A stretch of 64,000 nucleotides of DNA. Origin: Magallana gigas. Taxonomy: Eukaryota. The notes below the pieces were generated by a model, which saw nothing but the letters and a program-made list of their open reading frames with translations, did no database searches and was not told the origin of the DNA. The stretch covers positions 14,136,001 through 14,200,000 of the forward strand of contig NC_088860.1 in the NCBI RefSeq assembly GCF_963853765.1, read 5' to 3'. Position numbers and translations under genes: made by a program. Of this stretch, positions 17,063-57,900 are shown one piece after another (positions within the stretch are counted from its first letter, which is position 1; every line of letters begins with the position of its first letter).

Positions 17063-19864
17063 CTTGTGTAAATTTCTTCATTATCTACAAGATAATTACA
17101 TAAAAATGTACAAAGTATCTCTGTCCTTAACCATTTTGTACCTTTTGATATTTGATGATCTCAGTTTCTGGAATGGTTAGCACTCTCGTATCATAACACA
17201 CTGATTTGAAAACTCTTGACAACTTAAATAAGTTGATACATAAACAGGTATATGTAAAAAAAGTGTATATGTAAATGAAAAAAGTTTACGGGAAATTTTG
17301 AGCTATAATGAATTCTTATGGCATACTCTGATTACAGTATTCTTCATAAATGGCAGTTGAGGTAAGTTGATAATTATGGTCAGAGATATGCAATTAGTAT
17401 TTGCATCTTGAAAAAAAAAATCTGTACACGGTATATATCATATCTGGTTCTTCTGGAAGACAGCACAACTATATAGTAATACATGATATCACGCTGTGCT
17501 AGTGTCCTTCCCTTTGTGTCTGCGTGATCTTAAAGCAAAATGGAAACCCAATTTGTTTGTCATTAAACTCTTTTAAATTGGATTTATTTTCTTTTGACCG
17601 TATTAATTTCTAAAAAGCTCAATTTTTTTCATTTAGACATTTTTTTTTTGGAATTGTGTAAAATTTCTATTTATGGTAAATACACGTATGTAGTTTTTTT
17701 GCACTGCGTGTCTCTTTAAATGAAACAAGGGTATCTGAAAAATAATACCGAAACAAAACGAAATCAATATGGAACAAAATCAATCCATCATAACAAATAT
17801 GATGAATGGATTTCATTTTTTCAAACATGCGCTTAAGTTTAAATATACAACATCTGACTTATAACCATAATATCATTATGTGCTAATGGTTATTCTTAAA
17901 ATGATAACAGTATGAATATAGTACTTAATGATGGAAACTTATAGAAATATTACTAAGAACACTTATACATGTGCAGTACCACTCTCACATTCCACCGCAA
18001 TCAAACCACTCATATCAAATATACAGTTACAAATTATCCAATGACTTGATGCGATATGATCCTTCAAATGAATCATTTTAACAAGGACATAAGCTTTGGG
18101 TAATTTGTGCCAAACAGCAATTATAGACATCCTATGTCTGGCTGTTTCGTTGTTAGCAATTTAGAAGTCAACAACATTTTGTGCTTATGCAATCGGTGCA
18201 TCTCTTGTCACTTTAAACTTGTTTCATTTAAATGCGTAAACTACATGTAAACAGTTACATCATGCCTTAAGTATTTAAAAAACGGTTCCATTTCTCAATA
18301 AACCGATAATTTGGCCATGTTGCATAATATTGGTGTGTTATTAAATCTAAAACCAGAAAAAATATATATGCAATATTCAAAGTGTCTGGATTAGCAATAC
18401 ATTCAGTTTCAGGCATAAAATAATAAAATAAGGAAAATATCCTTCAACCGATGATTTAAAATAATATCAAATTAACAGACGTGTTTTTAGGATCTATAAC
18501 GGCAATAAATCAACCGTAACAGTATTTACATTAAGTTATAGTAAAGATAATTCTTTTTAAAGCATATTTTATTGAATAAATTCAATAGGATTGGACAACA
18601 GGCATAGCCTATGTATATCTTCTTCTTGTATGATAGGTATAATAGTAAAGCTAGCTATCTTATGCTTTCAGGATTTATGCCAAAGATAACTGGGATTTAC
18701 AATGGATTTTGTTAACCATTATAGAACCAGGTATTTCTTAATTACTACATGTAATTACAAATTACTAATTACTTCGCATTTGGAATGGATCTTATGGCTG
18801 AACCATTTTCTCTTTAGCGAAGTATACTGTAGAGGGCACTGATTTTTCACTTCTCTAAAGGAATGGAATAAACCGCTTTCCCTTACCTCATTATAATAAT
18901 TCTATATAACGCGTTATCTGATTGGTTCTAGACAATCACGTGCCAGGGCAATAAAACTTCATATTTCTCTGTAATCGTCGTATTTTTTATATTCCACACT
19001 TTCAGAAGCCACACGAATTTTCATTCCATGCATACCGAAAATCCCGAGTATCAACATACGATGTAATAAAATGATAATTTACAAAATATTATAGGATTAG
19101 AGCCTATATCAATAAATTTTAATTCTTTAATATAACATAGAAAGAAACCGGTTACATTTAGTATTTTTTTGCTCTACAAGAGTTGAAAAACGAATTGAAC
19201 CTGGTGTATTCTAAGTTACCACCTGTCGTTCGGAATAATAAACAACTTATTGCATGAACGTTCTGGAGATATGAAGATTTATTTTCCCAGAAAAACCATA
19301 TTTTCCTCGGGCGGTGTTCTCGGAAAGTATATATATGATTTTCGTGGTGGGGGAGGGGGAGGGAGGGATAATTTCCATATTTCCCTCACCATCATGCAAT
19401 AAATGTATAACGTATCACGATCGATTTTGTTAATAGTTTTTTTTTAACTGAATCAATTCCGATGCCGTAAGTATGCAATTTTCTCGAGAACAGCTTTTTT
19501 TTTTTTTAGTAAATATATATTTTTTTATTCCAGCATATTCCTACTTTCATATCTTTTTATGCTTTGAATGAAATCCCAAATCAAAATACAAAAAAAAAAA
19601 ATCCTTGACACAACTTACCGCATTTTACATACAAAGAGGAGAGATTTTGTTTCCGTAGCTTTGTTAAAGTACGAAAAACGGAAAAATAAAGTCTTTCAAC
19701 TATAATTTTGTGAATACACTATACTCCAGAGTTATACGGTGTATTGAATTTTTTAAAATAAAAATTTGATTACTCATAGACAGCTTTCATTATTATACAC
19801 AACTATGAAATACATGATTACATGATTTACAAAAACAAGATCGATACTCTTTTCATAGACGTCG

Positions 19865-20242
19865 GAACCGGGGGGGGGGGGGCTAGAGGGGCCATTTTTT
19901 TGCAAAGTTATACCTAACCATTAGAAACATAGCATGATAGAGGGTTCGCCCCCCCCCCCAACTTTTTCACGCAGGAAAGATTATTTTTCCTAAATTTACC
20001 TTGAAAGATTGAGAAGTTGGATTCAGAAGCATACTAGCCCCCCCCCCCCCCCCCCCCCCGGATTAGGAATTTCATGATTTTGGAAAAAAACATTTGGGAA
20101 AGTTTTTTTTTCTCTTTTGGAAGGATAGGTATACTCCCCCCCCCCCCCCCCCTCCCCCCACGGATTAGGATTTCCATGATTTTGGGAATTATTCTCTTCT
20201 CAATATTTCTGAGGATTAGTCTAGCCCCCCCCCCCCCCCCCA
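19865..20242. repeat. Poly-C/poly-G tracts with a duplicated GGATTAGGA(A/T)TT(T/C)CATGATTTTGG unit
   Basis: Several C10-20 runs separated by two similar spacers. Confidence 0.75.
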
Positions 20243-20295
20243 CTTTCAATTTGCTTCCGACGCCAGTGCTTTTGAAAGACCAATTTGTTCTTCAC

Positions 20296-24124: not shown

Positions 24125-26393
24125 ACAATGTCATATGTCATCGTTTATGTCTATGCACTGGTTGAATGGAAACTAATCATATGCTAAAACTGAACTTTAT
24201 TGTGGCATGGTTGGAAACAAATGAGTTTGTGGGTTCTTAACATAGAATTTATAGGTTTTAACACTAATCACTTTTTAAAACAAATTGTAAAATAATTTTT
24301 TTTATTTTTTTTTGTGGGGGGGGGGGGGGTGGTGGGGGGAGGTTGAGGGAAGGACAATATCAATGACTGTTTTGTATTGATAAAAAACCTTCATTTTTCC
24401 CAACTTCTTTTTTCAGATAAAAAATAAAAAGTGTTTGGAAAATATAGAAGTATATTACATGTTGTTAATAGTTGAAATAAGGGTGCACAAATAAATTAAA
24501 AGGTAGGAAGGGAAAAGAGGAAATAGTTGCTACTTGCCAGTACATATGATACATGTAAACGTATATTTGTAGATCCTAATTAAAAGTCAGGTTTAAATAT
24601 ATATGTATTGTGACATGACATTTAAGAACCCCCCCCCCCCCAAAAAAAAGAGAGAGACAGGAAAAACATTTACAGTCAATCATATTTAATGAATATTTAT
24701 GAATTTTTCACATACAGCTGTACATGTTAATTTTGTTTCTCGAATGTAAGAAAATTTGTTTGATGTGTTTTTTAAATGGATATACTGCGGAATTTGTTGA
24801 GTTACAGTATTATTTTTTACTGGTCAATAATTGGATTTTTCACGAATTTTAATGTTTAGAGATTGTTGAGATATGAAAGGACCACACCACTTTTCTTTAG
24901 CTTATAATTTAATTGTTTTTGTTTGTCAGTCACAATTTGGTTGGTGTTCTATGGAAGTAAAAACCATATATCAAATTTAAACTTCCCTGACTGAAAAAAA
25001 CACCCTAGTGTGCCAAGTGGATAAATATGAAAATTTCACATACGCATATACATATTATATGTAATAATGTTGATTGGCTTGCATATCCATCAGAAAAATG
25101 TTACAAAAATGAAAATGTAATTTTACACTATGTACTTAAAAAATGCAAAGTTAACTCATGGATTTAATTTAGATTTAGGTTTGTAAAACTGCAGAACAGT
25201 AGGTTCATTGAAATTCATTCTGCCAAGTAGTTGATTAGATTTTATGGAGATTGAATACATGTAACTTCATAAGATTTTGTTCAGACTATCATTTTTTTGA
25301 ACAATTTTTGAACAATTAAAATCATTCTTGCCTTGGTTGATTAATAATTATAACAATGTTCGTAAAATATAACCAAATAAAGTATTTCAATTTTATTTTT
25401 ATTAAGAATATACCGGTATTCTGTCATGTAATTTAGATTAATTTTCATTCATCAAAGAATAAATTACTACTATTCTGTTTTGCTTATTGGTCAATATTTT
25501 GCATTTATAACATCTTCCAGTGCCATCTTATGCTGTTGGCCTTGATCAGTTGAAAATATAGTGTTTTTTTTTCAAAATGAATTTATATTTACTGAAAAAT
25601 CAATTTAATATATAATTTAAAATAACTGAAAGATATTTGAAGTATAAGTAGTTACATGTATATGAAAATTCAACACTCTGCTCCTATTTATCAAAAGATG
25701 CGGCAGTAAGCGTTAACTTTGTGTTTTTTGTGAATGTACGGCTAGCTTAATATGACTAAAAGTACATGTTCTAATTGTCAAAAAGTTTTTATATGTAATT
25801 GTTTATTTTCAAAATGTTTTACAATAAATGTTGATGCATGATATCTGCTGTTAAAATTTTCATCTGATTTAGTTGTAATCGCAAGTTTGAAAAAACGCTA
25901 AAAACATTTTCTCGGCTCACGATTGTTCATTTTTTATAAAATTAGAAAATAGTTTATCAATTTAAACATTTTTATAATCAGTAACGGATAATTATAATTT
26001 TCAACTTATATATGAAGTACATGTAAGAGTTCTCAAATTATTATCTTACATACATGGCTGTGTGTTTTGCACAAATATACACATCATCTCCTCTCAAAAA
26101 ACCGGTTGATTGTTTATTTATGGCATATAAAATAACGTTTAGCAAACGTGACAATAATTGGCGTGTAAATAATTATCGGTCACCAAAATGAGCGTAATCA
26201 TAATTTGACGCCTGCGCGGTTGTGACGACAGTTCAGAATAGGTCAGAGGTCATTCTGTCACCTGTCAGTTTCGGTTATCACATATAAATTGATCACTTCC
26301 CTTGATAGTTTTATTTTCAACTTAACCAGAGACAAGTGTACATTTATTTTGACGTGTAATCCTTATATAAAAACGGTAAGAAGAAAAACAAGT

Positions 26394-27443
26394 ATGGAAT
26401 TCGATGAATGTATGATGGCTGGCGACTCGGAGCTTATGCTTAAGCAGTCATGTGCTTACGAATGTCGGCTTTTCAAAAATAAGTTTAGCTTTCATCACAG
26501 CACACCAAAAGAATGTACCAGCAGAAGTGTAATAGACCACAACACTTCCCATTATAACTACCTATGCAAGGATAAAACGAAGTTTAGACCGACGGAAGAG
26601 AAGACATATAAAACAATCGCTACTGATATTTCTGCAGCAGATAAAAGGATGATAAACTGCGCCACTTTGAAAGATATAAAGAAGAGAAAAGCCAGCCATG
26701 ACCAGCACCGTACAAATTCGAAGAGAACTGGAATTCAGACGTCAAGCCTAGCAAGTCAACCATTGACGAGATGTCAGCAGCTTTTAACAGAAGAAGTATA
26801 TCAATGCACCACCCCTGTGAACTCAGGAATGACACCGTATTTGTATGCAAACCGTGACCATTTGGACATTAAACACAGCACGCCTAAGGGGGTGGAAGAT
26901 ATTTTAGAAGAGGATTTGGATGAAGATGCATTGTGGGCCGGTGCTTCGGCTAAAGTCTTACAGCGCGTCATGTCAGCGCCCCAGCTTCCGGGACAACCAG
27001 AATTTCCCGAAGTGAAAAAACTGCATCATGCAATGTCACTTCCCCAATTATGGATGCCAAAACACGGAAGTCATCATCTGCATATTTGGCAGCGTCGTCT
27101 ACAGGTGTTAAACCGGAAAACGGAGAAGATGCGCGAAAAAAACCAAGCTCTGAAAGACAGACTTGAAATTATTCAAAAGCGAGCCGACCTGTTAGCCAGG
27201 AGTCCTGTGAATACACCCCCAAAACAGTCTGATGCGAAAACATCGTCCGTTCGTGGAAACAATAGATGTTACGTAAATGCTAAAATGTCCACCGATGTTA
27301 CTACTGTCAGAAAACCAAAGGTAAAAAAACAAGTGGTGCATCACCAGAACAATGTTTATTCATGTACACTCGCCAAGTTGATTATTGGAAATCCGGTGTT
27401 GCATACAACATGGAAAGATGGACAAAGGTGTACGTATGTCTGA
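26394..27443 (+). CDS. Intronless ORF of unknown function, about 349 aa from the first ATG
   Basis: The open frame runs 26289-27443 in a GC-richer block within AT-rich DNA; first ATG at 26394. Contains a coiled-coil-like segment (LQVLNRKTEKMREKNQALKDRLEIIQKRA). No recognisable domain. Confidence 0.6.
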   Translation: MEFDECMMAGDSELMLKQSCAYECRLFKNKFSFHHSTPKECTSRSVIDHNTSHYNYLCKDKTKFRPTEEKTYKTIATDISAADKRMINCATLKDIKKRKASHDQHRTNSKRTGIQTSSLASQPLTRCQQLLTEEVYQCTTPVNSGMTPYLYANRDHLDIKHSTPKGVEDILEEDLDEDALWAGASAKVLQRVMSAPQLPGQPEFPEVKKLHHAMSLPQLWMPKHGSHHLHIWQRRLQVLNRKTEKMREKNQALKDRLEIIQKRADLLARSPVNTPPKQSDAKTSSVRGNNRCYVNAKMSTDVTTVRKPKVKKQVVHHQNNVYSCTLAKLIIGNPVLHTTWKDGQRCTYV

Positions 27444-28138: not shown

Positions 28139-28288
28139 NNNNNNNNNNNNNNNNNNNNNNNNNNNNNNNNNNNNNNNNNNNNNNNNNNNNNNNNNNNNNN
28201 NNNNNNNNNNNNNNNNNNNNNNNNNNNNNNNNNNNNNNNNNNNNNNNNNNNNNNNNNNNNNNNNNNNNNNNNNNNNNNNNNNNNNNNN
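28139..28288. other. Assembly gap (150 N)
   Basis: Run of N characters. Confidence 0.99.
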
Positions 28289-35454: not shown

Positions 35455-35624
35455 ATACAGCCAATGAGTAGCTTCAGTTTGTGATACAGCCAATGAGTAG
35501 CTTCAGTTTGTGATACAGCCAATGAGTAGCTTCATTCTGTACAGCCAATGAGTAGCTTCATTCTGTACAGCCAATGAGTAGCTTCATTCTGTACAGCCAA
35601 TGAGTAGCTTCATTCTGTACAGCC
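35455..35624. repeat. Minisatellite, 6 copies of a 26-29-bp unit
   Basis: Repeated ACAGCCAATGAGTAGCTTCA. Confidence 0.92.
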
Positions 35625-37079: not shown

Positions 37080-37151
37080 TTAAATCTGTACAAGGTAACC
37101 AAATTAATACATGTAAAAGCCTTTTCTTTCTTCAGTAAATATCAATGCGTC

Positions 37152-37654
37152 TGTCACGGAGGTGACCGGCAATTCTTTATATCTACACATATTTGAAAGT
37201 CGGCTTGAAACTATTTACAAGTTTATTCACATCACCAAAGAAAAGTCACATTACATATTATGTTTAATCCATGTGCACCTCTGAATCTCCAACTCTATTC
37301 CTTACTCTATTCTACACCCATCTCCCTAATCTCTAAAGCTCATCATATATATACTATTAGGCTCCAATTGATGATTATCTTAAATCATTAGCTCCAATCT
37401 ATTAATTAATAAGCTCCATTTCTACATTTATCTCTATAAAATTCTAATCATCTTGTCTGAACTTTAACTTGACCTTGGCTCCCAATTCTACTTACAATAG
37501 CTCCCATAGCTCCAATAATTAAAAGCCCATAAAACTTGACCACTCTAGACATTAATCCATTCTTAATTACCCAAACACAGCTTGATCTGTCTGTACAGCG
37601 TATTACTCTATATAAATCACTATTAACAAATACACTAAAATTTACCCCTCATCA
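37152..37654 (-). repeat. 3' LTR of the Gypsy element
   Basis: Direct repeat of 44036-44538. On the minus strand there is an AATAAA at 37222-37227 and a TATA-like run at about 37345-37354. Confidence 0.96.
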
Positions 37655-37673
37655 TTCCTCCCCCTCATCTTTT
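37655..37673 (-). other. Polypurine tract
   Basis: Minus strand reads AAAAGATGAGGGGGAGGAA immediately before the 3' LTR. Confidence 0.88.
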
Positions 37674-38023
37674 ATATAACTGTCCTCAGTTTATGACTAC
37701 AATAACTGTAAACTAAAACTACAAAAAACTACCACTAAGAATACACGATTAGAAATAATAAAAAAACTCCACTAAACTACTTAAACATTAGGTATATACA
37801 CCTCAAAAATTAATGATCAAAATTCTCTACCCACTACCTTAATTTTTGATCTCAGTACTACTAATAAATGATATTAAAAGAAGTGCACAAAAGAATTAAA
37901 CAACAAAACATCAATTATACAATAGTAAAATAATATCTTTAACTGTTCATAGTAAAATAATATCTTTAACTGTCAATTCACGAAAATAATAATCCAATTA
38001 ATCGAAGTACTTAAGTGTCCAAA

Positions 38024-38929
38024 TCACAAACAAATATTTTCTGCGGATACAAATCGATTTCTTAAATTGTCCATATGTTCTGGTACTTCATTTAAAATGT
38101 TTTCGGCTACGGCGGAGAAGTCAATTTCTTCAGGTACAAGTCCTTCACTGTAACTGATTTCTGTCTCTCTTTCTATCGATTGGTGCCCGTCCAGATAGGT
38201 ATGTTGAAATTTCTTTAAAGTCAAAGTGATACACATTATTTCACGAGTGTCAATTTTACTAGTATGAGGGACATCTGATGAACTATCTGATGGTATTCCA
38301 TTATCCTCTTGAATCATGACATCTTCTTCTTCGTCTTCGCGGTGCACAGTATCTTCATCCTCTCCTAAATTCAGGATATATTCTTCGTCTTCATAATTTT
38401 CTGCGTTTAGGGTATATTCCTCTTCCTCCATATCGTTATCGTTCCCAGACTGCAGACGGTCCATTGTTTCTTCTAATGAGGTTAAGGATACTTCACTTAC
38501 AGGTGAATATGGATTGTCAAAAAATTCTTCAAAGTCGTTGTCATTTTCGTCGGAAATGTCTGAATACAGATCATTGGTAACAGTAACAAATACTGGCTCT
38601 TCATAGAGACTGCAATGATCCATTTTCAAATGTTGATTTAAGGCATATTTTCTTCCAAAAATTCTCCTACATGTTGTTACAGGGCATTGATGATGGAATC
38701 TTCCATGTCCATGAATTTCTCTGTTGTGACGATAAAGATTTTTTCTATGTTTAAATTTCCGATCACAAAGTGAACAATATTCAGTAGAATGAGGATAATC
38801 CATGAGTATTCGAAGAAGGCAAATGTAAGTTTGAGTTTTCTGATGAAGTTCTTCAGTATATATAGTGTCGAATGTCAAATTCAAAATTAATGTGTTTTGG
38901 GAGCCACACACAATGAATCTTGGAGCCAT
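38024..38929 (-). CDS. Extra ORF3 inside the Gypsy element: two C2H2 zinc fingers, acidic region and an unknown C-terminal domain (301 aa; 259 aa from the second ATG at 38803)
   Basis: Fingers CSLCDRKFKHRKNLYRHNREIH and CPVTTCRRIFGRKYALNQHLKMDH, then a D/E-rich tract. Lies between the pol stop and the polypurine tract, same strand as gag-pol, intact. Confidence 0.88.
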   Translation of the reverse strand: MAPRFIVCGSQNTLILNLTFDTIYTEELHQKTQTYICLLRILMDYPHSTEYCSLCDRKFKHRKNLYRHNREIHGHGRFHHQCPVTTCRRIFGRKYALNQHLKMDHCSLYEEPVFVTVTNDLYSDISDENDNDFEEFFDNPYSPVSEVSLTSLEETMDRLQSGNDNDMEEEEYTLNAENYEDEEYILNLGEDEDTVHREDEEEDVMIQEDNGIPSDSSSDVPHTSKIDTREIMCITLTLKKFQHTYLDGHQSIERETEISYSEGLVPEEIDFSAVAENILNEVPEHMDNLRNRFVSAENICL

Positions 38930-39070
38930 CCAGATGGTTTTGGAGCACTGGTCACTTTAATGTACATTATACAAGTTACGGTTCCTGTCAAATTATCTGC
39001 ATATCCATTCAACAAATTAAGAAATTTCACAGTTTTCTACTACATTTCTTCTTATTCAAATAACATTTCA

Positions 39071-42000
39071 TTAGTTTCTTCTTTGACGGTATGCAGCACC
39101 TCGACCTTTATAATTTCTTTCAAATTCCTCTAATAAATCTCCTGGGACCAATGAAGAATCTACCCATGCACTTTCCTTTTCATCGTTCTTATACTTAACA
39201 AAATATTTTGCCTCTGCTCTTCCCTTTTTATTTCTAGACCACAATTTATCACAAACTTCCACAATCTCATCATTTGATTCATTTACAGGATCCTCTTCAA
39301 TTTCATCATTTGTTCTGTTTCCTTCTTCCTGATGACAGACTTCGTTTTCATCTAAAGAATTATCTTCATCGGCACATTGATCTTCACAATATTGTAAATT
39401 TGGCGGTAAATCTTCAGGATCAACAAATATTTTCATTCTGTTTGCATGTATAATTTGCTGTTTCTTTTTGTTATCGCAACTTTCCACTTTGAAATTCACA
39501 GGAGATGTTTTCTCTATAACACGATGCGGTCCATTCCAAGGATGTATCAATTTACTTGTAAGACCTGGCTTTGTTACTGGTAAATAAATCCACACTCGAT
39601 CTCCTATGCTAAAATCTGGTTCTCTTGCATTTTTATCCTGATGTTGTTTTTGTTTTTGTTGCGCAAGTTCAATATTGTTCTTTACTAAGGTGAAAGCCTC
39701 ATTCAGTCTCTGGATTATAACACTTTTGTAGTCATCAACATCAGTATATAGTCTTGTTGGTTCAGACAATGCCACATCAATCGGTAGTCGCGCATCACGT
39801 CCATAAACTAAATAAAATGGTGTCTCCTGAATAGTTTCTTGTAAACTTGTCCTATACGCAAATAACACATAAGGAATATAAACATCCCAATCACGCTGAT
39901 GATCATTCACAAACATTGACAACATAGTTGCTAAGGTTTCATTAAACTTCTCTACCAATCCATCGCACTGAGGATGGTAAGCAGTTGTAAATATCTTCTT
40001 TGTATTCACTATTTCACAAACTTCCTTCATCAAACTCGAAGTGAAGTTACGTCCTCTATCAGAAAGTAATGTGCGAGGAGCTGAGTGTCGACAAATTATC
40101 TCTTCTACGAACAATTTTGCTGTGGTTTTTGCATCTGCGTTTGAAATTGCGAACGCTTCTACCCATCTTGTTAAGTAGTCTGAAAACACAACGATGTAAC
40201 GATTTCCTTTCAAACTTGGTGGTAATGGCCCTAAAACATCAACAGCCACTCTGTCAAATGGTCCATCCACAGGTATAGGTAACATTGGAGCTCTTTTTCT
40301 TCCCTTAGGTGTTTTTCGACTTGCACAGTTTACACAAGATTTACACCAAAAATCTATGTCTCTATACATTCCTTCCCAAAAGAATCTTTCTCTTATCTTG
40401 TAATACGTTTTATGAAATGCCAAGTGTCCTGCTGTATGGTCATCATGACACCAGGTTAAAACTTCATCTATCAATGTTCTTGGAATAACTAATCTCCTTC
40501 TAACCTCCTTGCGCTTTCCTTTAGCATCTGGAGCCCATATATGATAAAGCACATCATCCACCATCTCATAAAATGAAACGGAAGCCATAACTCTTTTAGC
40601 TCTCTCCTCATCTGTAGGAAGCTCATTGCATTTCAGGTAGTTCATTATATCACGTAACTTTGGATCCTTCATCTGCATTTCACTGATGTTCTTTGTTTGT
40701 AGTTTTTCTGGTAATTCCTCAAGAGTCATGATACTTTGTGTCTCTTTTCCCGATCTTGACAACCCATCTGCATTTCCATGCTTCTTTCCAGGTTTGTACT
40801 GAATCTCAACATCATATTCTTGTATAGCCAATGCCCATCTCGCTAATCGTCCACTTGGATTCTTTATCCCCATGAGCCATCGTAATGGATTATGATCTGT
40901 TATAACAGTAAATTTGTGCCCTAACAAATACTGTCTGAATATTCCAATTCCCCACACAACAGCTAAAGCTTCCTTTTCAATAACAGGATAGTTAAGTTCA
41001 CTCTTCTTCAAACTTCTACTGGCATATGCAATTGGACGCTCTCCAACATCTGTGTCTTGTGACAAGACTACTCCCAAACCCTGATCACTTGCATCAGTAC
41101 AGAGCTTAAATGGTTTTTCAAAATCAGGAAAACACAACACAGGAGCTTTGGTCATCAACTCTTTCAATTTCTGAAAAGCTTCTTCACATTTCTCATTCCA
41201 AGCAAATAAAGTCTCTTTATGTAACAGTTTATTTAACGGGTCTGCAATTTTCGCAAAATTGGGAATGAATTTTCGATAATATGATGCCAATCCAAGGAAT
41301 GCTCTCAAAAACTTCACGGAAGTTGGTCTCGGAAATTTACGCACGGCTTCTACTTTCTTTGGATCTGCTTTTACTCCTCCAGATGTTACAATATGTCCAA
41401 GAAATTCCACTTCAGTTTTGAAAAATGAACACTTTTTCTTTTTCAATTTCAAATTCGCTCCCCTTAATCTTGTAAACACTTCTTCAATTCTTTCTATATG
41501 CTCATCGAAGGTTTCCGAGAAAACAATAATATCATCAATATATGCCAACGCCATTTTCCACTGTATTCCTGATAGAACCAGATCCATCAGCCTCTGAAAT
41601 GTACCAGGCCCATTGCACAATCCAAACGGAAGACAGTTAAATTCATATAACCCCTCTGAGGTTACAAATGCAGTTTTCTCTTTATCCTCTTCACGAACAG
41701 GTACATTCCAATAACCTGTTAATACATCCATAACAGAAAAGTACTTTGCTTTCTGGAACACTTCCAACATTTCATCTATTCTAGGCAAGGGATATACATC
41801 CTTCCTAGTGACTGTATTCAACTTTCTGTAATCTATACAAAATCTATAACTCCCATCAGCCTTTTTCACCAAAACCACTGGTGATCCCCATGGACTACTT
41901 GAGGGCCTTATAACTTCTTTTTCCAACATACTCTTAATCTGTTTTCTTACTTCTTCCTTCTGTGCAAATGGTATTGAATATGGGCGTTGTTTTATGGGAT

Positions 42001-43030
42001 GAGCATCTCCCGTGTCAATATGGTGACTAACTAAACTTGTTTCTCCCAGATCATTATCATCTTTGGCGAATACATCTTGGTACTTTCTAAACATCCTTGT
42101 AAGTCTCTCATTCTGTTCCTTGGACATACCTTCCTTGTCTATATCTATATCCGTTAAAAGATCAGGATCGTTTCTTTCCTTTGATTCTAATATTTCATTC
42201 ACTGGATAACTGTCACGAATTTCATCTACTTCACAAAAACTCCCGATGTTCACCTTCTTATGTAGAATTACAGGCTTAGTTGACGAATTTACAACGGAAA
42301 TAGCCATCTGGTCACTGGCTTTTGTTAACACTCTTGCTGGCATTATGTTATACTTTTCAATGAACTCAATCTTCGGCTCCACAATTCCCAATTTTCCATG
42401 AAATTCCGAACTAACTCTTGCAACACACATTACTTGAGATCTTGCAGGTATTTCTATCTTTTCCATCAAATGTACGGAACACCTTATATCTTGACTGTCA
42501 CTCCAAAACTTCACATAATGTCCATTCCAGTTCACAGAACCATCCTTCATATCAAGAATTGCACCCACTTTCTTCCTAACATCAGTTCCTATAATCACAT
42601 CATAGCACAAATTCCTTGCAACAAACACATTATGTTTAAACAGTTCACCGTTCACTTCAATTTCACACTCCACTATTCCTTCAACATTAATTGCCTGTCC
42701 AGTTGCTGATACAATTCGTTTATCTGTTGACGTTAATTTAGTTCTGAGGTCAGGACCAATAAATCTTTCACTTATCAAAGAAACAACTGCTCCAGTATCC
42801 AACATTAAAATTGCATCAATTCCAAATATTTTCCCTTGAATTTGAATCCCCTGATAGTCACTTTTTACAAGTGAAGTTATTTTTCCAATGTTTTTGACAT
42901 TTTCCTCCATTTTTACTTTTAATTTTGATTCTTCATTGTCTTTTTCTGATGAACTTTTATCAGAGGTATTTCTTCCTTTTCCACCATTGACCACCTTACC
43001 CTCTTCTAAGGGGGTCTGTTTTAGTTTAAA
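39071..43030 (-). CDS. pol: Gypsy Pol (protease, reverse transcriptase, RNase H, integrase, chromodomain-like tail), expressed by -1 frameshift from gag
   Basis: Uninterrupted frame 39071-43087. Motifs: protease LDTGA; RT YIDDII; RNase H TDASDQG..EKEALAV..TDH; integrase HDDHTAGH..CKSCVNC, DVLGP..SDRGRNF..VEKFN; a GPY/F-like WNGPHRV; terminal YFVKYKN..SAWVDSSLVPGDLLEEF. Confidence 0.95.
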   Translation of the reverse strand, partial: FKLKQTPLEEGKVVNGGKGRNTSDKSSSEKDNEESKLKVKMEENVKNIGKITSLVKSDYQGIQIQGKIFGIDAILMLDTGAVVSLISERFIGPDLRTKLTSTDKRIVSATGQAINVEGIVECEIEVNGELFKHNVFVARNLCYDVIIGTDVRKKVGAILDMKDGSVNWNGHYVKFWSDSQDIRCSVHLMEKIEIPARSQVMCVARVSSEFHGKLGIVEPKIEFIEKYNIMPARVLTKASDQMAISVVNSSTKPVILHKKVNIGSFCEVDEIRDSYPVNEILESKERNDPDLLTDIDIDKEGMSKEQNERLTRMFRKYQDVFAKDDNDLGETSLVSHHIDTGDAHPIKQRPYSIPFAQKEEVRKQIKSMLEKEVIRPSSSPWGSPVVLVKKADGSYRFCIDYRKLNTVTRKDVYPLPRIDEMLEVFQKAKYFSVMDVLTGYWNVPVREEDKEKTAFVTSEGLYEFNCLPFGLCNGPGTFQRLMDLVLSGIQWKMALAYIDDIIVFSETFDEHIERIEEVFTRLRGANLKLKKKKCSFFKTEVEFLGHIVTSGGVKADPKKVEAVRKFPRPTSVKFLRAFLGLASYYRKFIPNFAKIADPLNKLLHKETLFAWNEKCEEAFQKLKELMTKAPVLCFPDFEKPFKLCTDASDQGLGVVLSQDTDVGERPIAYASRSLKKSELNYPVIEKEALAVVWGIGIFRQYLLGHKFTVITDHNPLRWLMGIKNPSGRLARWALAIQEYDVEIQYKPGKKHGNADGLSRSGKETQSIMTLEELPEKLQTKNISEMQMKDPKLRDIMNYLKCNELPTDEERAKRVMASVSFYEMVDDVLYHIWAPDAKGKRKEVRRRLVIPRTLIDEVLTWCHDDHTAGHLAFHKTYYKIRERFFWEGMYRDIDFWCKSCVNCASRKTPKGRKRAPMLPIPVDGPFDRVAVDVLGPLPPSLKGNRYIVVFSDYLTRWVEAFAISNADAKTTAKLFVEEIICRHSAPRTLLSDRGRNFTSSLMKEVCEIVNTKKIFTTAYHPQCDGLVEKFNETLATMLSMFVNDHQRDWDVYIPYVLFAYRTSLQETIQETPFYLVYGRDARLPIDVALSEPTRLYTDVDDYKSVIIQRLNEAFTLVKNNIELAQQKQKQHQDKNAREPDFSIGDRVWIYLPVTKPGLTSKLIHPWNGPHRVIEKTSPVNFKVESCDNKKKQQIIHANRMKIFVDPEDLPPNLQYCEDQCADEDNSLDENEVCHQEEGNRTNDEIEEDPVNESNDEIVEVCDKLWSRNKKGRAEAKYFVKYKNDEKESAWVDSSLVPGDLLEEFERNYKGRGAAYRQRRN
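42989..43030 (-). promoter_or_regulatory. -1 programmed ribosomal frameshift signal (slippery heptamer plus stem-loop)
   Basis: U UUA AAC in the gag frame (43024-43030), a 7-nt spacer, then GACCCCCUUA-GAAGAGGG-UAAGGUGGUC (10-bp stem with 1 mismatch). Pol is in the -1 frame. Confidence 0.82.
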
Positions 43031-43926
43031 CCAGTACGTTGAGGAGCTCTTGTGAATTTTCTTGTAGTGCTTGGTGCAAATTGACAATCTCTAGCAAGGT
43101 GATTGGGTCGTCCGCAAACATAACAACTCCGGGTCTGACGATTCCTTATCTGATTACTGTTTTGTGGTTGAACATTTCGGGTATATGGTAAGCGTTTCAT
43201 ATTCGTGTTGTTTAGACCATCCAGTTTCTCTGCAATCTTGTCAAGCTTCCCTGTCATCTTCTCAAAGGAATCCATTAATATTTTCATCTCGCTCGCCACT
43301 ACGTTAACTTTGGAAGGTTCTGGCTGACTGCTGGTGATTAATTGCTCATTACATTCTTCTCTTTTTGCTATCCTAAAAGCCTGTTCAAAACTCTGGGGGT
43401 CGGCCATCATAACATATCTTCTTAACTCGGGACGTAAGCCTTGTAAGAAATGTTCCATGACAAGCCTGTCATGCTCATCTAAAGAAACCCCTCCATGTGC
43501 ACGTCTAGCTAACTTCAGAATAGAGCTTCCATAATCTTCAACATTTTCTCTAGGTAATTGTTTCCTTTGGAATAGCTCGGTGTAATACATTCTTTGTAAC
43601 TCTTTAGGAAAAAATCTCTCCTTCATACGATCAACCAACCTATCGAAATCTTCTTGAATATCTTGATCCAAATCTTCATAAAAATCAGCTGCACGGCCTC
43701 TCAAATATGCAGGTAGCAATTCAACTTTTCTGTCTGGTCCCCATCTATTAGCTCGACCTATCCTTTCAAAAGTTTTAATCCAGTTCTCAAAATCTTCGCC
43801 AACATCTCCATAGAATTTAGAAGGAGTTACATTTGATTTTGTTTCCGTTGCTTCTCTCATAGTTACCATCCTTGGAGACGGTGATGGTATTGGTGATAAG
43901 CTTCTTTGTCTTCCTTTTCTTCCCAT
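43021..43926 (-). CDS. gag: Gypsy Gag, 301 aa
   Basis: Capsid-like motifs (PSKFYGD..FENWIKTFERI..NRW, FLQGLRPELR) and a CCHC knuckle CYVCGRPNHLARDC. Confidence 0.93.
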   Translation of the reverse strand: MGRKGRQRSLSPIPSPSPRMVTMREATETKSNVTPSKFYGDVGEDFENWIKTFERIGRANRWGPDRKVELLPAYLRGRAADFYEDLDQDIQEDFDRLVDRMKERFFPKELQRMYYTELFQRKQLPRENVEDYGSSILKLARRAHGGVSLDEHDRLVMEHFLQGLRPELRRYVMMADPQSFEQAFRIAKREECNEQLITSSQPEPSKVNVVASEMKILMDSFEKMTGKLDKIAEKLDGLNNTNMKRLPYTRNVQPQNSNQIRNRQTRSCYVCGRPNHLARDCQFAPSTTRKFTRAPQRTGLN

Positions 43927-44013
43927 TTTTATGATAACAAATTAGGTCCAAAATGAACGTTAATTTTTTTCCATATCCTGATTCCTAATTAATCCCACAG
44001 AATCAGAATAAGG

Positions 44014-44031
44014 ATCCCACTTCTGACACCA
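44014..44031 (-). other. Primer-binding site complementary to the tRNA-Leu 3' end
   Basis: Minus strand reads TGGTGTCAGAAGTGGGAT, 4 nt inside the 5' LTR. It is complementary to ATCCCACTTCTGACACCA, which I recognise as the 3' end of metazoan tRNA-Leu(CAA). Confidence 0.85.
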
Positions 44032-44035
44032 AAAA

Positions 44036-44538
44036 TGTCACGGAGGTGACCGGCAATTCTTTATATCTACACATATTTGAAAGTCGGCTTGAAACTATTT
44101 ACAAGTTTATTCACATCACCAAAGAAAAGTCACATTACATATTATGTTTAATCCATGTGCACCTCTGAATCTCCAACTCTATTCCTTACTCTATTCTACA
44201 CCCATCTCCCTAATCTCTAAAGCTCATCATATATATACTATTAGGCTCCAATTGATGATTATCTTAAATCATTAGCTCCAATCTATTAATTAATAAGCTC
44301 CATTTCTACATTTATCTCTATAAAATTCTAATCATCTTGTCTGAACTTTAACTTGACCTTGGCTCCCAATTCTACTTACAATAGCTCCCATAGCTCCAAT
44401 AATTAAAAGCCCATAAAACTTGACCACTCTAGACATTAATCCATTCTTAATTACCCAAACACAGCTTGATCTGTCTGTACAGCGTATTACTCTATATAAA
44501 TCACTATTAACAAATACACTAAAATTTACCCCTCATCA
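44036..44538 (-). repeat. 5' LTR of the Gypsy element
   Basis: Direct repeat of 37152-37654; no differences found by eye. Confidence 0.96.
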
Positions 44539-45696
44539 CGTCGAAAACTATGCCCAAACATTTTTTTAACACAGTTAATATCTGCTATTCAAAACAACAA
44601 CTGTGTTTGAGAGAAGATGCTGGAAATTTTTCATGTGACGGAACATGTGAAGGTAATAAATAATTGTGCAATTCAAAATGAAAAAAATAAATAAATTGTG
44701 ATTTAAAATAGTATATGTCACGGCCAGCCTTTCTTTGATTTGTGTATGTGGAAAGGGGGGGGGCTTACATAAAGTCACGCAACAGAGAGTTTCCGAAACG
44801 CCTCTTTTCAAAGTTTCCACCAATCAAAAACTCTTCAGTGTTGGAGAAAATGAAAAATTCTTCACCACGAAGACTGCATTCTTAGCGAGAATTTGATTGG
44901 CTGAATAACTGAGTTATGTTCTAATTATTATTGGTCTGAAGTGTCCTGTTTCGGGTCACATTTACCACATCTTTCCTTAACGTCGGCTAGTATTACTTTG
45001 ATGTCACTGAATTCCGTAGATATATATTCTCCTTTGTGCTACTGAGTCTTCTTGAGATGTTCATTAATGTCATTGTATTTTATTACAATGTTGCCTAATA
45101 ATTGATTTAGTAAATAAATTGTCTGTCAGAATATTTTTTTTTTAAATTTACATGTATCAATTTCACTGTACTCATGAGGGGGTTTTCACTATTAATTTTT
45201 TTTGTATCTGTTTGCACCCCATTGCTTTCTCGAGTTGTTTTTTATTAGTCTTCTTTGGTTCAGCATGGACATGTTTGTTGACGAGAAAGTTCATTCCCTG
45301 AATTTGAATGGTTCCTGCCATTGATTTGCACCCCAGTGAAGTTTCCACTTTCTGCTACATCGTAGAATTTGGCGTCAAATTCTTCAGAATTCTTCAGAAA
45401 TGTAGGGGTGAATCATGTTTCGTTCAACTCAAAATAGCGCAATCTAGGCATCCTTCACATACAGATAGGGTTTGATTTGTTCAAAGTAAGCTTTTTTTGG
45501 CCTTAGCACAGGTTACTGGCCGTGAGCTTGCCAGTATATAGTTCTCTAGATAATTATTGGTAGCTTAAGCATGACAATTTTTAAAAATATATATATTTTT
45601 TAGTATATTTTCGAAGAGCATGGTCTGACGGAGATAATTCGGGTTACAGGGTAATGAAGTTGTTGAATTTCTGGATTTGGGCTGACTGTCGATATA

Positions 45697-54900: not shown

Positions 54901-57900
54901 CCTGGCAAAGCGAGCTTCTCCTTGAGGAACATCTCTCATATAGAATGAAGTAAAGGTGTTTTCTGTTGCCCAAATGAGCTGTCTGTAGAATTTCTTCTAG
55001 AGTTGCACCACTGAAAGGGCCCATGAAGTTGCCAATCGTCTTGTATCATGTGCACGCACATGAGATAAAGTCTCACTGTTATGTTCATACACAAACTTTA
55101 CTAGTGACACAATCCATCTTGAAATTGAATTCTTGGATGATGGTTTTTGTGAGTCCGATTTGTAAGTCAAGAATAAACACTTTTCATCACCACGAGAAGA
55201 CTCTGTCCTTTTTAGGTACATTTTAAGTGCTCTACAAGGACACAAAAGCAAGTCTCTACTGTCTGTTGCAAAGCTATTAAAATCTGGTATGAATATTGGT
55301 TTCCATGGCTTTCCTAATCTCTGAGTTTTGGCTAAAAACTGTATATTTGGTAATAAACGTATTCCATTCTGCTCAAGACGTAAATGTGACTCTCCAATTG
55401 AAAGAGCTTGAATTTCGCTTACTCTTGATGCTGTTGCCAGAGCTACAAGGAACACTGTCTTCCATGTAAGGTACTTCATATCGCATGAATTCATCGGTTC
55501 CAATGGGGAGTCACACAACTTCCAAAGGACAGTCGGCAAATCCCAATTTGGAAGTAATGGTCGTACATTAGGTTCAGAATTGTATATTCCTTTTATTAAC
55601 TTTGACAGATCAGTGTTGTTAATAACAGAACTATTGCTCCAACCCTTATGCATAGATGTTATCGCTGACCTATAACCCATTAAAGTATTTGGCTTACAAT
55701 TACGTTCTTCATGCAAATAGATGAAGAAGTCTGCTAAATCAGCTACAGTGGCCTCAACTGAATCCTTTTGGTTCTTGGCACACCATTCCTTGTAGATTCG
55801 TATTCTAGCATCATAGATTTTTCTTTTTGACTGTCTTCGGGTGTTGAAGATAAATGACTTAGCTTTCTCAGAAAATCTTTTCTCTGTTCTTTGTTGTTTG
55901 AAATTTTCCAAACCGCCAGATGCAGACTTTATGGACTTTGATGAATGAACTGCCCTCTTCTTTGAGTCAACATGTCTCTTATTATTGGAAGTTCCTTTGG
56001 AATGTCGACCAATAGATGTAGTAGGTCTGGAAACCATGACTGTCTTGGTGAAAACGGAGCGATGAGGAGAAGAACACACGACTCCTGTTCCACTTTCCTG
56101 AGTACTCTCGGAATTAATATGGGAGGAGGAAATGCATATGCAAACATTCCTGTCCAATCTACAGCTAGCTCATCGCATTCCCATGCCAAGGGGTCGGGAA
56201 ACGGAGAACAAAACACTGCTAGTTTCTGGTTTTCCCTTGTTGCGAATAAATCTATGTTTGGAGTGGGGAAAACTCGAAAAATCTGCTGAACTATTTCTTG
56301 GTTGAGACTCCATTCTGTCATCTTGGGAATTTGTCGCCCTCTGGACAACTGATCCGCTTTTACATTCTTTTTCCCTGGAATGTGGGCTGCTTTGAGCTGT
56401 ATCCCGAGAAGGTGACACCAATGCAGAATCCTCCATGTCATCACGCATAGGGCTGCAGACTTTGTCCCCCCTTGGTGATTGATGTAAGACACTACTGTTG
56501 AATTGTCTGTCCTCAGCAAGACTTGCCCGTGTTTGACATTGTCCCTTAAGTGATAAAGTGCATTCTCCACTGCACTGAGTTCCAACAGATTTATATGTGA
56601 TGACTGTTCTATCACCGTCCATTTCCCCGACACATTGCGATCCTCTAGGTGGGCTCCTGACCCGTAAGTTGATGCATCCGTCCACAAGGTTAGGTCTGCT
56701 CTGAAGCTCAGAATAGACGTCCCTGCCAGAACGTTCCCTCTCTCTATCCACCAGAGAAGATGTGGGATGAGGAAACTGTCGATTTGAATCATATGATCCA
56801 GTTCGTCCACATGTGGACGCCACTGGGACAGAAGGCAGAACTGAATGGGACGCATCTTGAGTCTGGCAAGAGGTACCAAATCTATACAGGCTGCCATTAA
56901 ACCAAGGACTCTGAGGAATGTACGTGCTGGGATAAAAGATTCCATAACCATGGTAGAAATTGCCCCACGCAGACTGAGAAAACTGGGGTAGACCATACCC
57001 TGTTGGAGGTTGAATAGTGCTCCAAGATACGTTATCTGTTGCGTTGGTTGCAGAATTGACTTGGATTGATTTATTACCAGGCCCAAGTCCATCAGCAGAA
57101 ACAAAGTTCTCCTTAATTGATGAACTAATGTCATTCGATCTGCATTTTTGAGAAGCCAATCGTCCAGGTACATATAAATGGAAATCTGTTGACTTCTTAG
57201 ATGTGCACCTTTTGCCCCCATTAATTTCGTAAACACTCTTGGGGCTGTTGCTAGACCGAAGGGCATTGACCTGGATTGATAATGGATATTGTCTATGCAA
57301 AACCTGAGGTATTTCCTGTCTTCTGGATAAATTGGAACATGTAGATATGCATCCTTTAGATCTATTGATGCCACCCAGTCTCCTACATTCAGAGCCTGTA
57401 TTATTGACCTTAGAGATTCCATCTTGAAATGTTGATTTTGGAGAAATATATTTAACGGTTTCAAATTGAGAATCGGACGTTAACCTCCGTCTCGTTTTGG
57501 AACAACAAAAAAGGTGCTGTAAAACCCCTGACCTTCCTGGGTCTTGGGAACAATCTCTATGGCATGCTTTCCTAATAAACTTTCTATTTCTTCTAAAATA
57601 CATTGTCTTTGGACGACATCTTGTATATTTGTTATTCTTACTCCTGTATTTGGAGGATGCTTTATGAAAACAAGTTTGAGTCCTTCCTAGACTATTTTTA
57701 AAATCGAATCGTTGGATGTAATTTTCATCCACTCCCTGTGGTACGAAATGATCCGACAGCCTACTTTGGTTGATTTCTGCAACTCGAGTCGAGTCTCTAA
57801 TTGATCCGCCAAAATTACTTTGGGGGGCGAAACCCCAAACGATATTGTGCAGAGCCACGAGTTTGACCTCTGAAGGAACCTATCGAATTAAAATTTTCGT

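Follow-up and report, generated by a model that had tools for sequence, protein, structure and literature searches.

A young Gypsy element with a third open reading frame

The window, a 64,000-nucleotide stretch of Magallana gigas contig NC_088860.1, holds an intact and very young Gypsy element on its minus strand (Table 1). Its two LTRs are each 503 bp long, have TG..CA ends, and are 100% identical, and with the CGTC duplication at their flanks they bear out the earlier note, which had reported two identical LTRs. The LTRs and duplication, the order of the pol domains (protease, RT, RNase H, and integrase; Pfam matches), the gag domains, and a primer-binding-site-like sequence and polypurine tract beside the LTRs are those of a Ty3/Gypsy element (Metaviridae). 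The integrase tail, which is kept in four relatives, matches Pfam Chromo weakly (E 0.035; 14.5 bits against a cut-off of 25.1) and gave a single weak match in a PDB profile search (E 0.015). Rfam returned one sub-threshold snoRNA-like match over the entire element and nothing else.

A third open reading frame, ORF3, lies where the earlier note had placed it, on the gag-pol strand between the pol stop and the polypurine tract. The frame at 38024-38929 is uninterrupted for 301 aa; the random expectation of 301 open codons, calculated by base composition, is ~2e-10, which argues against a mis-called ORF. While the open frame described in the note thus stands, its 301 aa are probably not the length of the product. 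ORF3 starts at the residue equivalent to Met43 in all relatives, and the 42 codons 5' of Met43 show no protein-level conservation in the related locus L003 and lie within or before the promoter-like block described below. Based on these comparisons, the likely coding sequence is 38024-38803, and the product is probably 259 aa.

Table 1. Features of the Gypsy element and its ORF3, with positions counted from the first nucleotide of the window.
Feature	Position	Strand	Remarks
Target-site duplication CGTC	37148-37151; 44539-44542	.	read from LTR flanks
Gypsy element	37152-44538	-	
3' LTR	37152-37654	-	
AATAAA, 3' LTR	37222-37227	-	
TATA, 3' LTR	37346-37353	-	
U3 hexamer cluster, 3' LTR	37360-37514	-	
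Polypurine tract	37655-37673	-	adjoins 3' LTR on inner side
ORF3, likely coding sequence	38024-38803	-	from Met43, 259 aa plus stop; mechanical ORF reaches 38929
Conserved C-terminal domain	38027-38245	-	long beta-hairpin plus helix
Acidic linker	38246-38605	-	mostly disordered; net charge -38
Family motif in linker	about 38519-38566	-	Y-[SE]-D-[IV]-[ST] plus acidic run
C2H2 finger 2	38615-38692	-	C-x4-C-x12-H-x4-H
C2H2 finger 1	38711-38779	-	C-x2-C-x12-H-x4-H
TATA box	38858-38864	-	61 nt 5' of Met43; putative ORF3 promoter
Conserved non-coding block	38869-38989	-	5' of ORF3; candidate enhancer part of internal promoter
GCTCC(C)AA, three copies in block	38940-38946; 38920-38926; 38897-38904	-	
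pol	39071-43087	-	open; -1 frame relative to gag; stop 39071-39073
gag	43021-43926	-	open; capsid-like domain and CCHC knuckle
Slippery heptamer TTTAAAC	43024-43030	-	immediately 5' of gag stop; putative -1 frameshift site
Primer-binding-site-like sequence	44013-44031	-	begins TGG, 4 nt past 5' LTR
5' LTR	44036-44538	-	
TATA, 5' LTR	44230-44237	-	
U3 hexamer cluster, 5' LTR	44244-44398	-	

The ORF3 protein

The N-terminal part of ORF3 scores above threshold for Pfam zf-C2H2 over two stretches (28 bits against a cut-off of 25.2), and the translation confirms both fingers of the earlier note with their helix residues, H-1/N3/R6 in finger 1 and R-1/A3/Q6 in finger 2. An AF2 model folds each as a beta-beta-alpha unit (pLDDT 76-89), and the closest structures to the finger region by Foldseek are DNA-bound Tramtrack, CTCF, and WT1. 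By spacing, fold, and Pfam score, these are classical C2H2 fingers. The linker between them differs from the canonical DNA-binding type, and Pfam families of RNA-binding fingers match weakly and below threshold (zf-met, E 0.004; jaz, E 0.013).

Such matches would suit an RNA-handling cofactor whose fingers bind element RNA and aid its export, translation, or packaging, a role with a precedent in the Rev-type proteins of complex retroviruses. A Gypsy accessory protein, CERV, is likewise needed for genomic-RNA export (PMC10309623). Yet these Pfam matches remain below threshold, the closest structures are fingers on DNA, ORF3 has no homology to CERV, and the conserved block ahead of ORF3 (38869-38989) gives no RNA-structure signal (z +0.7), so we see only a slim chance of an RNA-handling role.

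The linker that follows the fingers contains 41 D+E per 120 residues, in line with the strongly acidic tract of the earlier note, and its family motif is present in 18/21 family members. The C-terminal domain (~70 aa), for which the note had proposed structure prediction, is modelled by AF2 as a beta-hairpin plus helix (pLDDT 82-96) that matches no solved or viral fold: Foldseek against PDB and BFVD (viral folds) gave best E values of 0.06-0.3 with TM <0.4. A Pfam search with this domain found no family, even at E 10, and a PDB profile search with ORF3 found generic zinc fingers only. This layout of fingers, acidic linker, and orphan C-terminal domain is consistent with a DNA-binding regulator.

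ORF3 occupies the place after pol where an envelope gene might be expected, and this position is all that speaks for a degenerate env. The 19-residue Kyte-Doolittle mean peaks at 0.46 from Met43 onwards and at 1.05 in the extension upstream of it; accordingly, ORF3 has neither a transmembrane helix nor a signal peptide, as the earlier note had maintained. The protein is also highly acidic and half disordered, with no match to a Pfam envelope family or a viral fold. We rejected a degenerate env, which is hardly credible.

Homologues, position, and selection

In L001/L002, L003, L005, L006-L008, L009, L012, L013, and L014, the integrase C-terminus is directly followed by an ORF3 homologue of the same layout, and an ENA contig also carries gag-pol-ORF3. 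The earlier note had asked whether homologues sit consistently in this position; they do in every relative with readable flanking DNA, even though RT identity among carriers is as low as 48-54%. Named hosts include the oysters Crassostrea virginica, Saccostrea cucullata, S. echinata, M. gigas, and C. angulata and the mussels Mytilus edulis and M. galloprovincialis. Scans of JGI metagenomes and IMG/VR for further loci found no relatives. RT and ORF3 distances are weakly correlated in the co-phylogeny (rho 0.46, p 0.09) because ORF3 identity is near saturation (25-45%).

Named records of the family are annotated as "uncharacterized," "C2H2 domain-containing," or, for one NCBI member, "Cp190-like." An ORF3 fragment truncated at its 5' end, with no accompanying pol, carries a host-gene annotation in both C. 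angulata and M. gigas. All members of the C-terminal-domain family with readable flanks are in or beside Gypsy-element sequence. Among the matches listed, no host gene of another architecture carries this domain, and none of the 150 listed (of 314, E up to 0.001) that matches the C-terminal domain is a protein >340 aa.

The comparison of dN/dS among copies that the earlier note had proposed points to purifying selection. In L006 and L014, an unsaturated pair, ORF3 omega is 0.25 (17 synonymous and 17 non-synonymous changes), with values of 0.15 for the fingers, 0.17 for the C-terminal domain, and 0.47 for the linker. Between the window element and L003, ORF3 dN is 0.29, far under a saturated dS; constraint on the C-terminal domain (dN 0.15) equals that on the integrase C-terminus (0.13). 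L006, L007, and L008 are near-identical copies, too similar for dN/dS. However, the youngest pair, the window element and L001, gives an ORF3 omega of 1.2 where gag and pol have 0.10-0.13 (Fisher p 0.002-0.005), with non-synonymous change elevated in the linker and fingers. This suggests relaxed or diversifying evolution in part of the protein.

The omega of about 1.2 and the truncated fragment without pol are what might be seen if ORF3 were a passenger, either a mis-called ORF or a host zinc-finger gene that was acquired in a single event and has since drifted neutrally. The earlier note had raised neutral host capture against its own reading, and it is contradicted by the constant position across several genera, by selection in both the unsaturated and the deep pair, and by the Gypsy context of the C-terminal-domain family. 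We regard a passenger as very improbable. Altogether, ORF3 is a real accessory gene under selection, carried by a Gypsy lineage in pteriomorph bivalves (oysters and mussels). The constant position, purifying selection, and lack of membrane features agree with the earlier note's view of an element-encoded gene that is not env, and we are highly confident that ORF3 is such a conserved accessory gene.

The elevated non-synonymous change in the linker and fingers would also be expected under host conflict, and thus for a chromatin adaptor that serves as an anti-silencing factor or integration tether. Here, the fingers or C-terminal domain would anchor ORF3 to element DNA or integrase, while its phosphorylatable acidic motifs would make contact with a chromatin or SUMO-pathway factor of the host, blunting silencing or steering insertion. 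The widely kept linker motif fits this idea, as does a slight enrichment of SUMO-interaction-like (aliphatic-core-plus-acidic) stretches in the linkers (18 versus 10.4 +/- 3.7 in shuffles). However, this enrichment is weak (22/500 shuffles reach 18), the adaptor has no identifiable partner, the integrase already has a weakly chromodomain-like tail, and the promoter-like block with U3 motifs is left unexplained. We consider an adaptor unlikely, and return to ORF3 as a DNA-binding regulator.

A promoter-like block and motifs shared with U3

The non-coding block 5' of ORF3, about 120 nt long, shares 87-88% identity with L003, against 43-55% in the sequence on either side. Boxes equivalent to the TATA box beside it are found in L003, L005, L009, and L010, such that a TATA lies 56-82 nt ahead of the ORF3 ATG in five loci from roughly three lineages. 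The hexamer TGG(G)AGC occurs three times in the block and six times in U3 just ahead of the LTR TATA, and the spacing of all six U3 copies is kept in L003. TTGGAGC is found 14 times in the window versus 4.8 expected, with 9 of the 14 inside the element, and all five window copies of TGGGAGC (5/5) are inside it. Judged from sequence, this suggests that the block and TATA may form an internal promoter that is co-regulated with the LTR, and it lends circumstantial support to ORF3 as a DNA-binding regulator.

The Mytilus element L013, an independent lineage, has another 8-mer, GAACCGAC, twice in U3 ahead of the TATA and twice ahead of ORF3; one further copy lies in the U3 of the 3' LTR, and there are none elsewhere in 20.7 kb. 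By the canonical finger code, which we use here as a heuristic, the contacts that can be assigned with confidence point to G-G-A as the target of the window protein and to GGGGAA as that of the L013 protein. The repeated motifs include GGAG (window) and GG(GG)AA (L013), in partial agreement; this match is post hoc and leaves part of each motif unaccounted for. For L009, L012, and L006, comparison of U3 with the sequence ahead of ORF3 gave no common motif, or none that was convincing. L006 and L012 have palindromic U3 repeats ahead of their TATA. In L006-L008, just 27 nt separate pol from ORF3, with no TATA.

The best reading of ORF3, drawn by analogy with foamy-virus Tas, is an autoregulatory activator: an element-encoded transcription regulator, probably activating, that would act on the internal and LTR promoters via their shared hexamers. 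A trans-activator is one of the two roles that the earlier note had suggested, beside an anti-silencing factor. We give the activator mechanism a probability of roughly 0.4. In this model, ORF3 would be a small, soluble protein whose two N-terminal fingers read ~6 bp of DNA, while the C-terminal beta-hairpin/helix module probably serves in self-association or partner binding. In the window subfamily, ORF3 would be expressed from a dedicated TATA promoter within the element and bind the TGG(G)AGC hexamers in U3 and the internal promoter; by acting on both promoters, it could set up a feed-forward circuit in the style of Tas and its internal promoter. Several observations count against this mechanism: the hexamers could equally be host-factor sites, three loci yielded no convincing shared motif, L006-L008 have a short pol-ORF3 gap and no TATA, the finger-code match is partial, the inter-finger linker is not canonical, RNA-binding finger types match weakly, and omega is 1.2 in the youngest pair.

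The same cis elements would equally serve a negative autoregulator that binds the shared hexamers, damps LTR transcription, and limits harm to the host through copy-number control. The present data do not distinguish the sign of regulation, and two-finger proteins can act as repressors or as activators. However, long acidic stretches with aromatics among them are more typical of activation regions, and we consider a repressor quite unlikely.

Known systems and implications

Like ORF3, the foamy-virus regulator Tas is encoded 3' of the structural genes; the targets of Tas are the LTR and an internal promoter (PMC12789967). The putative promoter just 5' of ORF3 also lies inside the element and, as in foamy viruses, has cis elements related to those of U3. 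In contrast to Tas, the putative DNA-binding part of ORF3 is a C2H2 finger pair, carried by a bivalve retrotransposon without env, and neither a Pfam scan, a PDB sequence search, nor a viral fold search found Tas/Bel homology. In the Gypsy-like Tor elements of Oikopleura, expression of the third gene depends not on splicing but on an internal promoter that lies within or past pol (PMC4402516), which resembles the arrangement proposed for ORF3; however, the Tor third gene encodes a membrane glycoprotein (env), while ORF3 encodes a soluble zinc-finger protein. CERV, from the C. elegans Gypsy element Cer1, is a non-structural nuclear regulator that its own element needs for expression and that is phosphorylation-dependent and lineage-restricted (PMC10309623). 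ORF3 is similarly element-encoded and non-structural, with a putative regulatory role, but CERV is a 517 aa protein with other domains, is translated from a spliced mRNA that overlaps gag, and acts in RNA export. In LTR retrotransposons of bdelloid rotifers, the slot past pol also holds non-env cargo, a GDSL esterase and a DEDDy exonuclease (PMC5408684). Those ORF3s are enzymatic and show no departure from neutrality, whereas the bivalve ORF3 is of a DNA-binding type and under purifying selection.

Host C2H2 proteins share with ORF3 a pair of classical beta-beta-alpha fingers and, after it, an acidic region. Unlike them, ORF3 has no BTB or other host-type effector domain, and its C-terminal domain is found, among the matches listed, only in this family of small proteins. 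ORF3 also lacks the membrane fusion glycoprotein features of errantivirus-like, env-carrying Gypsy elements. The earlier note knew of no described Gypsy clade with this cargo, and we found no description of C2H2 ORF3 cargo in LTR retrotransposons in the literature searched; a mollusc LTR survey, a metazoan env survey, the rotifer ORF3 paper, and papers on Steamer-like elements do not mention it. ORF3 marks a family of accessory genes, undescribed in the literature searched, in the Gypsy elements of oysters and mussels. Complex retroviruses are distinguished by their accessory regulatory genes, which are, to our knowledge, very rare in animal LTR retrotransposons.

It is possible, though doubtful, that the whole lineage consists of "complex retrotransposons," each with its own sequence-specific zinc-finger trans-activator, a dedicated internal promoter, and recognition residues that co-evolve with its own U3 motif. 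If so, the U3 motif would be GGAG-type in the window subfamily and GGAA-type in the Mytilus subfamily, and each subfamily's transcription would be partly independent of host factors and subfamily-private.

The ORF3 family occupies the env slot of Gypsy elements that are seemingly active now or were recently, in bivalves of commercial and ecological importance. If ORF3 is an element-private transcription factor, it would represent an independent origin of Tas-like autoregulation and give a handle on how retrotransposon subfamilies break free of their reliance on host factors. Several host "genes" mis-annotated in the genomes of oysters and mussels would then be explained as well.

The Gypsy element and its third open reading frame

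Gag, pol, and ORF3 (the third ORF, in the env slot) of the Gypsy element are all open, with zero breaks, and ~270 nt of non-coding sequence separates pol from ORF3. The two LTRs are 100% identical and a CGTC duplication lies on the flanks; this LTR identity marks the element as a very recent insertion. Relative to gag, pol occupies the -1 frame; the gag stop is immediately preceded by the heptamer TTTAAAC. The C-terminal tail of pol is chromodomain-like, matching Pfam Chromo under threshold (E 0.035) and giving a single weak match in a PDB profile search; it is kept at three loci that carry ORF3 relatives (L003, L005, and L009). A chromodomain-bearing, env-carrying Gypsy clade was reported in molluscs by a 2026 survey (PMC13524379). 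Elsewhere in the window, a second retroelement remnant includes one ORF that matches reverse transcriptase (RT; RVT_1, E 1.3e-17) and, weakly, RNase H; the remnant is 23% identical over 132 aa to the pol of the Gypsy element.

Coordinates of features in the window and at loci carrying ORF3 relatives
Sequence	Feature	Coordinates	Strand	Description
Window	Gypsy element	37152-44538	-
Window	LTRs	37152-37654, 44036-44538		503 bp each; TG at start, CA at end
Window	Primer-binding-like site	44013-44031	-	TGG-initiated, inward of 5' LTR
Window	gag	43926-43021	-	capsid-like domain, CCHC knuckle
Window	pol	43087-39071	-	protease, RT, RNase H, integrase (zinc-binding, core, p58-type C-terminal domains)
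Window	pol C-terminal tail	39074-39220	-	chromodomain-like
Window	Promoter-like block	38869-38989		between pol and ORF3
Window	ORF3	38929/38803-38024	-	after non-coding stretch 3' of pol
Window	3' UTR			370 nt, between ORF3 and polypurine tract
Window	Tandem duplication in 3' UTR	37922-37973		perfect, 27 nt, 1.9 copies
Window	Polypurine tract	37655-37673	-	adjoins 3' LTR
Window	Second retroelement remnant	54997-58712	-	unrelated; overlapping ORFs in several frames
Window	Tandem repeat, host flank	35456-35624		26 nt, 6.3 copies (97% matches), 1.5 kb from element
Window	Satellite-like tandem array, host flank	15097-15532		70-235 nt
Window	N run	28139-28288		150 N (assembly gap or mask)
Window	ORF	26289-27443	+	384 aa; no Pfam match
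L004	ORF3 fragment	9701-10408		Crassostrea angulata
L006	U3 repeats	1595-1750		four 38-bp repeats with internal palindromes
L012	U3 repeats	3550-3625		two units with internal palindromes
L013	Array downstream of element	13982-20286		837-bp unit in seven or more copies

The earlier note described an uninterrupted 301-aa ORF with two C2H2 fingers, a strongly acidic tract, and no membrane segment, and the translation agrees on each point. A 301-codon open frame has a chance probability of ~2e-10 given the base composition; the fingers score 28 bits in Pfam (cut-off 25.2) and carry exactly the helix residues quoted; the linker has 41 acidic residues out of 120 and a net charge of -38; and a search of the translation for a hydrophobic segment found none. 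That ORF3 is a remnant of env is scarcely credible. The open frame stands as described, but its product is probably shorter: all relatives start at a position aligned with Met43 (residue 43), the stretch before it is not kept as protein in the ORF3 frame of L003 (a 59%-identical relative), and the first ATG (38929) sits among clustered, repeated DNA motifs that have a TATA box downstream. Thus, the product is most likely 259 aa (38803-38024).

Structure was predicted by AF2 with the family alignment, and the C-terminal module, for which the earlier note had proposed such a prediction, was also folded alone. The model has two beta-beta-alpha fingers, which match DNA-bound Tramtrack, CTCF, and WT1, then a disordered linker, and a C-terminal module consisting of a long beta-hairpin and a 17-residue helix (pLDDT 82-96 when folded alone), with no match in Pfam, PDB, or BFVD. 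On its own, an exposed hairpin-plus-helix of such a size would probably be unstable, so we infer that the module may self-associate or bind a partner. We consider it unlikely that the protein is a chromatin adaptor, that is, an anti-silencing factor or an integration tether.

Relatives, genomic position, and selection

The first relatives came from a word-index search, which returned four: P0001 (95%), P0002 (59%), and one annotated protein each from M. gigas and C. angulata, both matching only the C-terminal half of ORF3. Scanning 1.84 billion representatives exhaustively with a HMMER profile of the family gave 21 proteins with E below 1e-10, with generic zinc-finger proteins ranking lower and matching the fingers only. 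True relatives have a common layout of two fingers, an aliphatic stretch plus motif, a variable acidic linker, and a conserved ~70-aa C-terminal domain; in 18 of the 21, Y-[SE]-D-[IV]-[ST] and then an acidic run come after the aliphatic stretch. Wherever the source is named, it is an oyster or a mussel; the database names are generic only.

We read the genomic context of each relative for which flanking sequence was available. L001 is a whole element collapsed on one LTR, with gag, pol (99% aa), and ORF3 (96%). Full elements are found at L009 (Mytilus edulis) and L014 (Crassostrea virginica), gag-pol-ORF3 at L012 (Saccostrea cucullata) and L013 (M. edulis), and gag (466 aa), pol (1337 aa), and ORF3 on an ENA contig. 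ORF3 follows the integrase end at L002 and the integrase C-terminus at L003, L005, L006, L007, and L008. In answer to the homologue search proposed in the earlier note, ORF3 thus lies downstream of integrase on the same strand wherever flanks were read, and relatives at so many loci contradict a capture private to this copy. The carriers' RTs form two groups (about 72% and 66-79% identity within); because identity between them is only 48-54%, either ORF3 has a long history in this part of the Gypsy tree or it has moved between lineages.

At the loci of the relatives, one large deletion lies inside L003 pol, L012 has pol in two pieces and one internal duplication of ~2 kb in the ORF3 region, pol of L013 is split into five pieces or more, and L014 pol differs from L006 by one length difference. 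The L004 fragment is 5'-truncated, has 0 stops in 237 codons, lacks a matching pol, and is followed by the 3' UTR and then an LTR, of which the first 50 nt are present; the NCBI model splices it to a downstream exon. The host "genes" LOC128174653 (C. angulata) and K1QI46 (M. gigas) are such stop-free, 5'-truncated ORF3 fragments with no matching pol, either mis-annotated or incipiently co-opted.

The dN/dS comparison among copies, also proposed earlier, covered three pairs. Between L006 and L014 (unsaturated, dS 0.11), ORF3 shows 17 changes of each class, synonymous and non-synonymous (omega 0.25; fingers 0.15, linker 0.47, C-terminal domain 0.17), with gag and pol at about 0.3. For the deep pair, window versus L003, dS is saturated and ORF3 dN is 0.29 (fingers 0.24, linker 0.46, C-terminal domain 0.15; integrase C-terminus 0.13). 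By these per-part values, the fingers and C-terminal domain have stayed under constraint over time, and the linker evolves fast. In the youngest pair, window versus L001, the ORF3 count is 12.5 non-synonymous against 2.5 synonymous changes (omega 1.2), with none falling in the C-terminal domain, versus omega of 0.10 in gag and 0.13 in pol (Fisher p 0.002-0.005), so recent change in this subfamily is either relaxed or diversifying. A neutral passenger is a very improbable account of ORF3. Separately, ORF3 synonymous divergence between L006 and L014 (0.11) is 3-4x that of gag and pol (0.03-0.04), a hint that sublineages may have recombined in the region of ORF3.

A promoter-like block and motifs shared with the LTR

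Between pol and ORF3, we describe a new promoter-like block of ~120 nt that is 87-88% identical between the window and L003, where non-coding flanks are 43-55% and ORF3 coding sequence 63-82% identical. The block has three copies of GCTCC(C)AA inside 50 nt. In U3, six copies of the reverse complement, TGG(G)AGC, lie at LTR positions 141-289, the last ending 13 nt before the LTR TATA box. In L003, the order and spacing of all six U3 sites are preserved, though the LTRs are just ~72-75% identical. TTGGAGC occurs 14 times in the 64-kb window versus 4.8 expected, nine of these inside the 7.4-kb element, as are all five copies of TGGGAGC. Downstream of the block, a TATA box lies 61 nt before Met43, with counterparts 56-82 nt upstream of the ORF3 ATG in L003, L005, L009, and L010; the decamer ACTATATAAA is invariant in the L005/L009 alignment. 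The block has no RNA-structure signal and no Rfam match. Because its hexamers are inverted relative to U3, the block may instead be an antisense promoter.

L013 is a Mytilus element that belongs to the other RT group, and its U3 has two copies of another 8-mer, GAACCGAC, immediately ahead of the TATA box; two more lie upstream of ORF3 and a further one in the U3 of the 3' LTR, with none elsewhere in 20.7 kb. No motif common to U3 and the pre-ORF3 region was found in L009, L012, or L006. Directly ahead of the TATA box, L006 and L012 have palindromic U3 repeats, an arrangement that a dimeric binder would fit.

In canonical C2H2 contacts, Arg specifies G and Asn specifies A. Applied as a post hoc heuristic to positions -1, 3, and 6, this code predicts a G-G-A core for the window protein (finger 2 Arg at -1; finger 1 Arg6, Asn3, His at -1), and the motif core is GGAG. 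For L013 (finger 2 Lys6, His3, Arg at -1; finger 1 Arg6, Asn3, Asn at -1) it predicts GGGGAA, which is present in one U3 copy, with GGAA in two others and AGAA in one. For L006 and L012, it predicts GAG for finger 2, and GAG is present in both palindromic repeats. The matches cover part of each motif only and are consistent with recognition by each protein of its own element's motifs.

Proposed function and known systems

Altogether, our preferred reading, to which we give a probability of roughly 0.4, is that ORF3 encodes a transcription regulator, probably an activator, which would be expressed from an internal promoter within the element and would regulate both this promoter and U3 via the common hexamers. 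A negative autoregulator, repressing its own expression, is improbable. The activator reading is closest in its proposed working to the foamy-virus circuit of the regulator Tas and its internal promoter (PMC12789967), with which ORF3 has no common sequence or fold. Gypsy-like Tor elements are documented to have an internal promoter for a third gene (PMC4402516), Cer1 to encode a regulatory accessory protein (PMC10309623), and rotifer elements to carry non-env cargo in the ORF3 slot (PMC5408684); unlike the window ORF3, none of these, nor Tas, is a C2H2 protein. An RNA-handling cofactor resembling CERV, the Cer1 regulatory protein, is more doubtful still than negative autoregulation.

The earlier note knew of no Gypsy clade with this cargo, and we likewise found no description of C2H2 ORF3 cargo of LTR retrotransposons in the literature searched; a mollusc LTR survey, a metazoan env survey, and papers on Steamer-like elements do not mention it. 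The element belongs to a known kind, LTR elements whose accessory gene is something other than env, and its C2H2 cargo was not found described in that literature. Whatever its mechanism, ORF3 is very probably a conserved, selected, non-env accessory gene.
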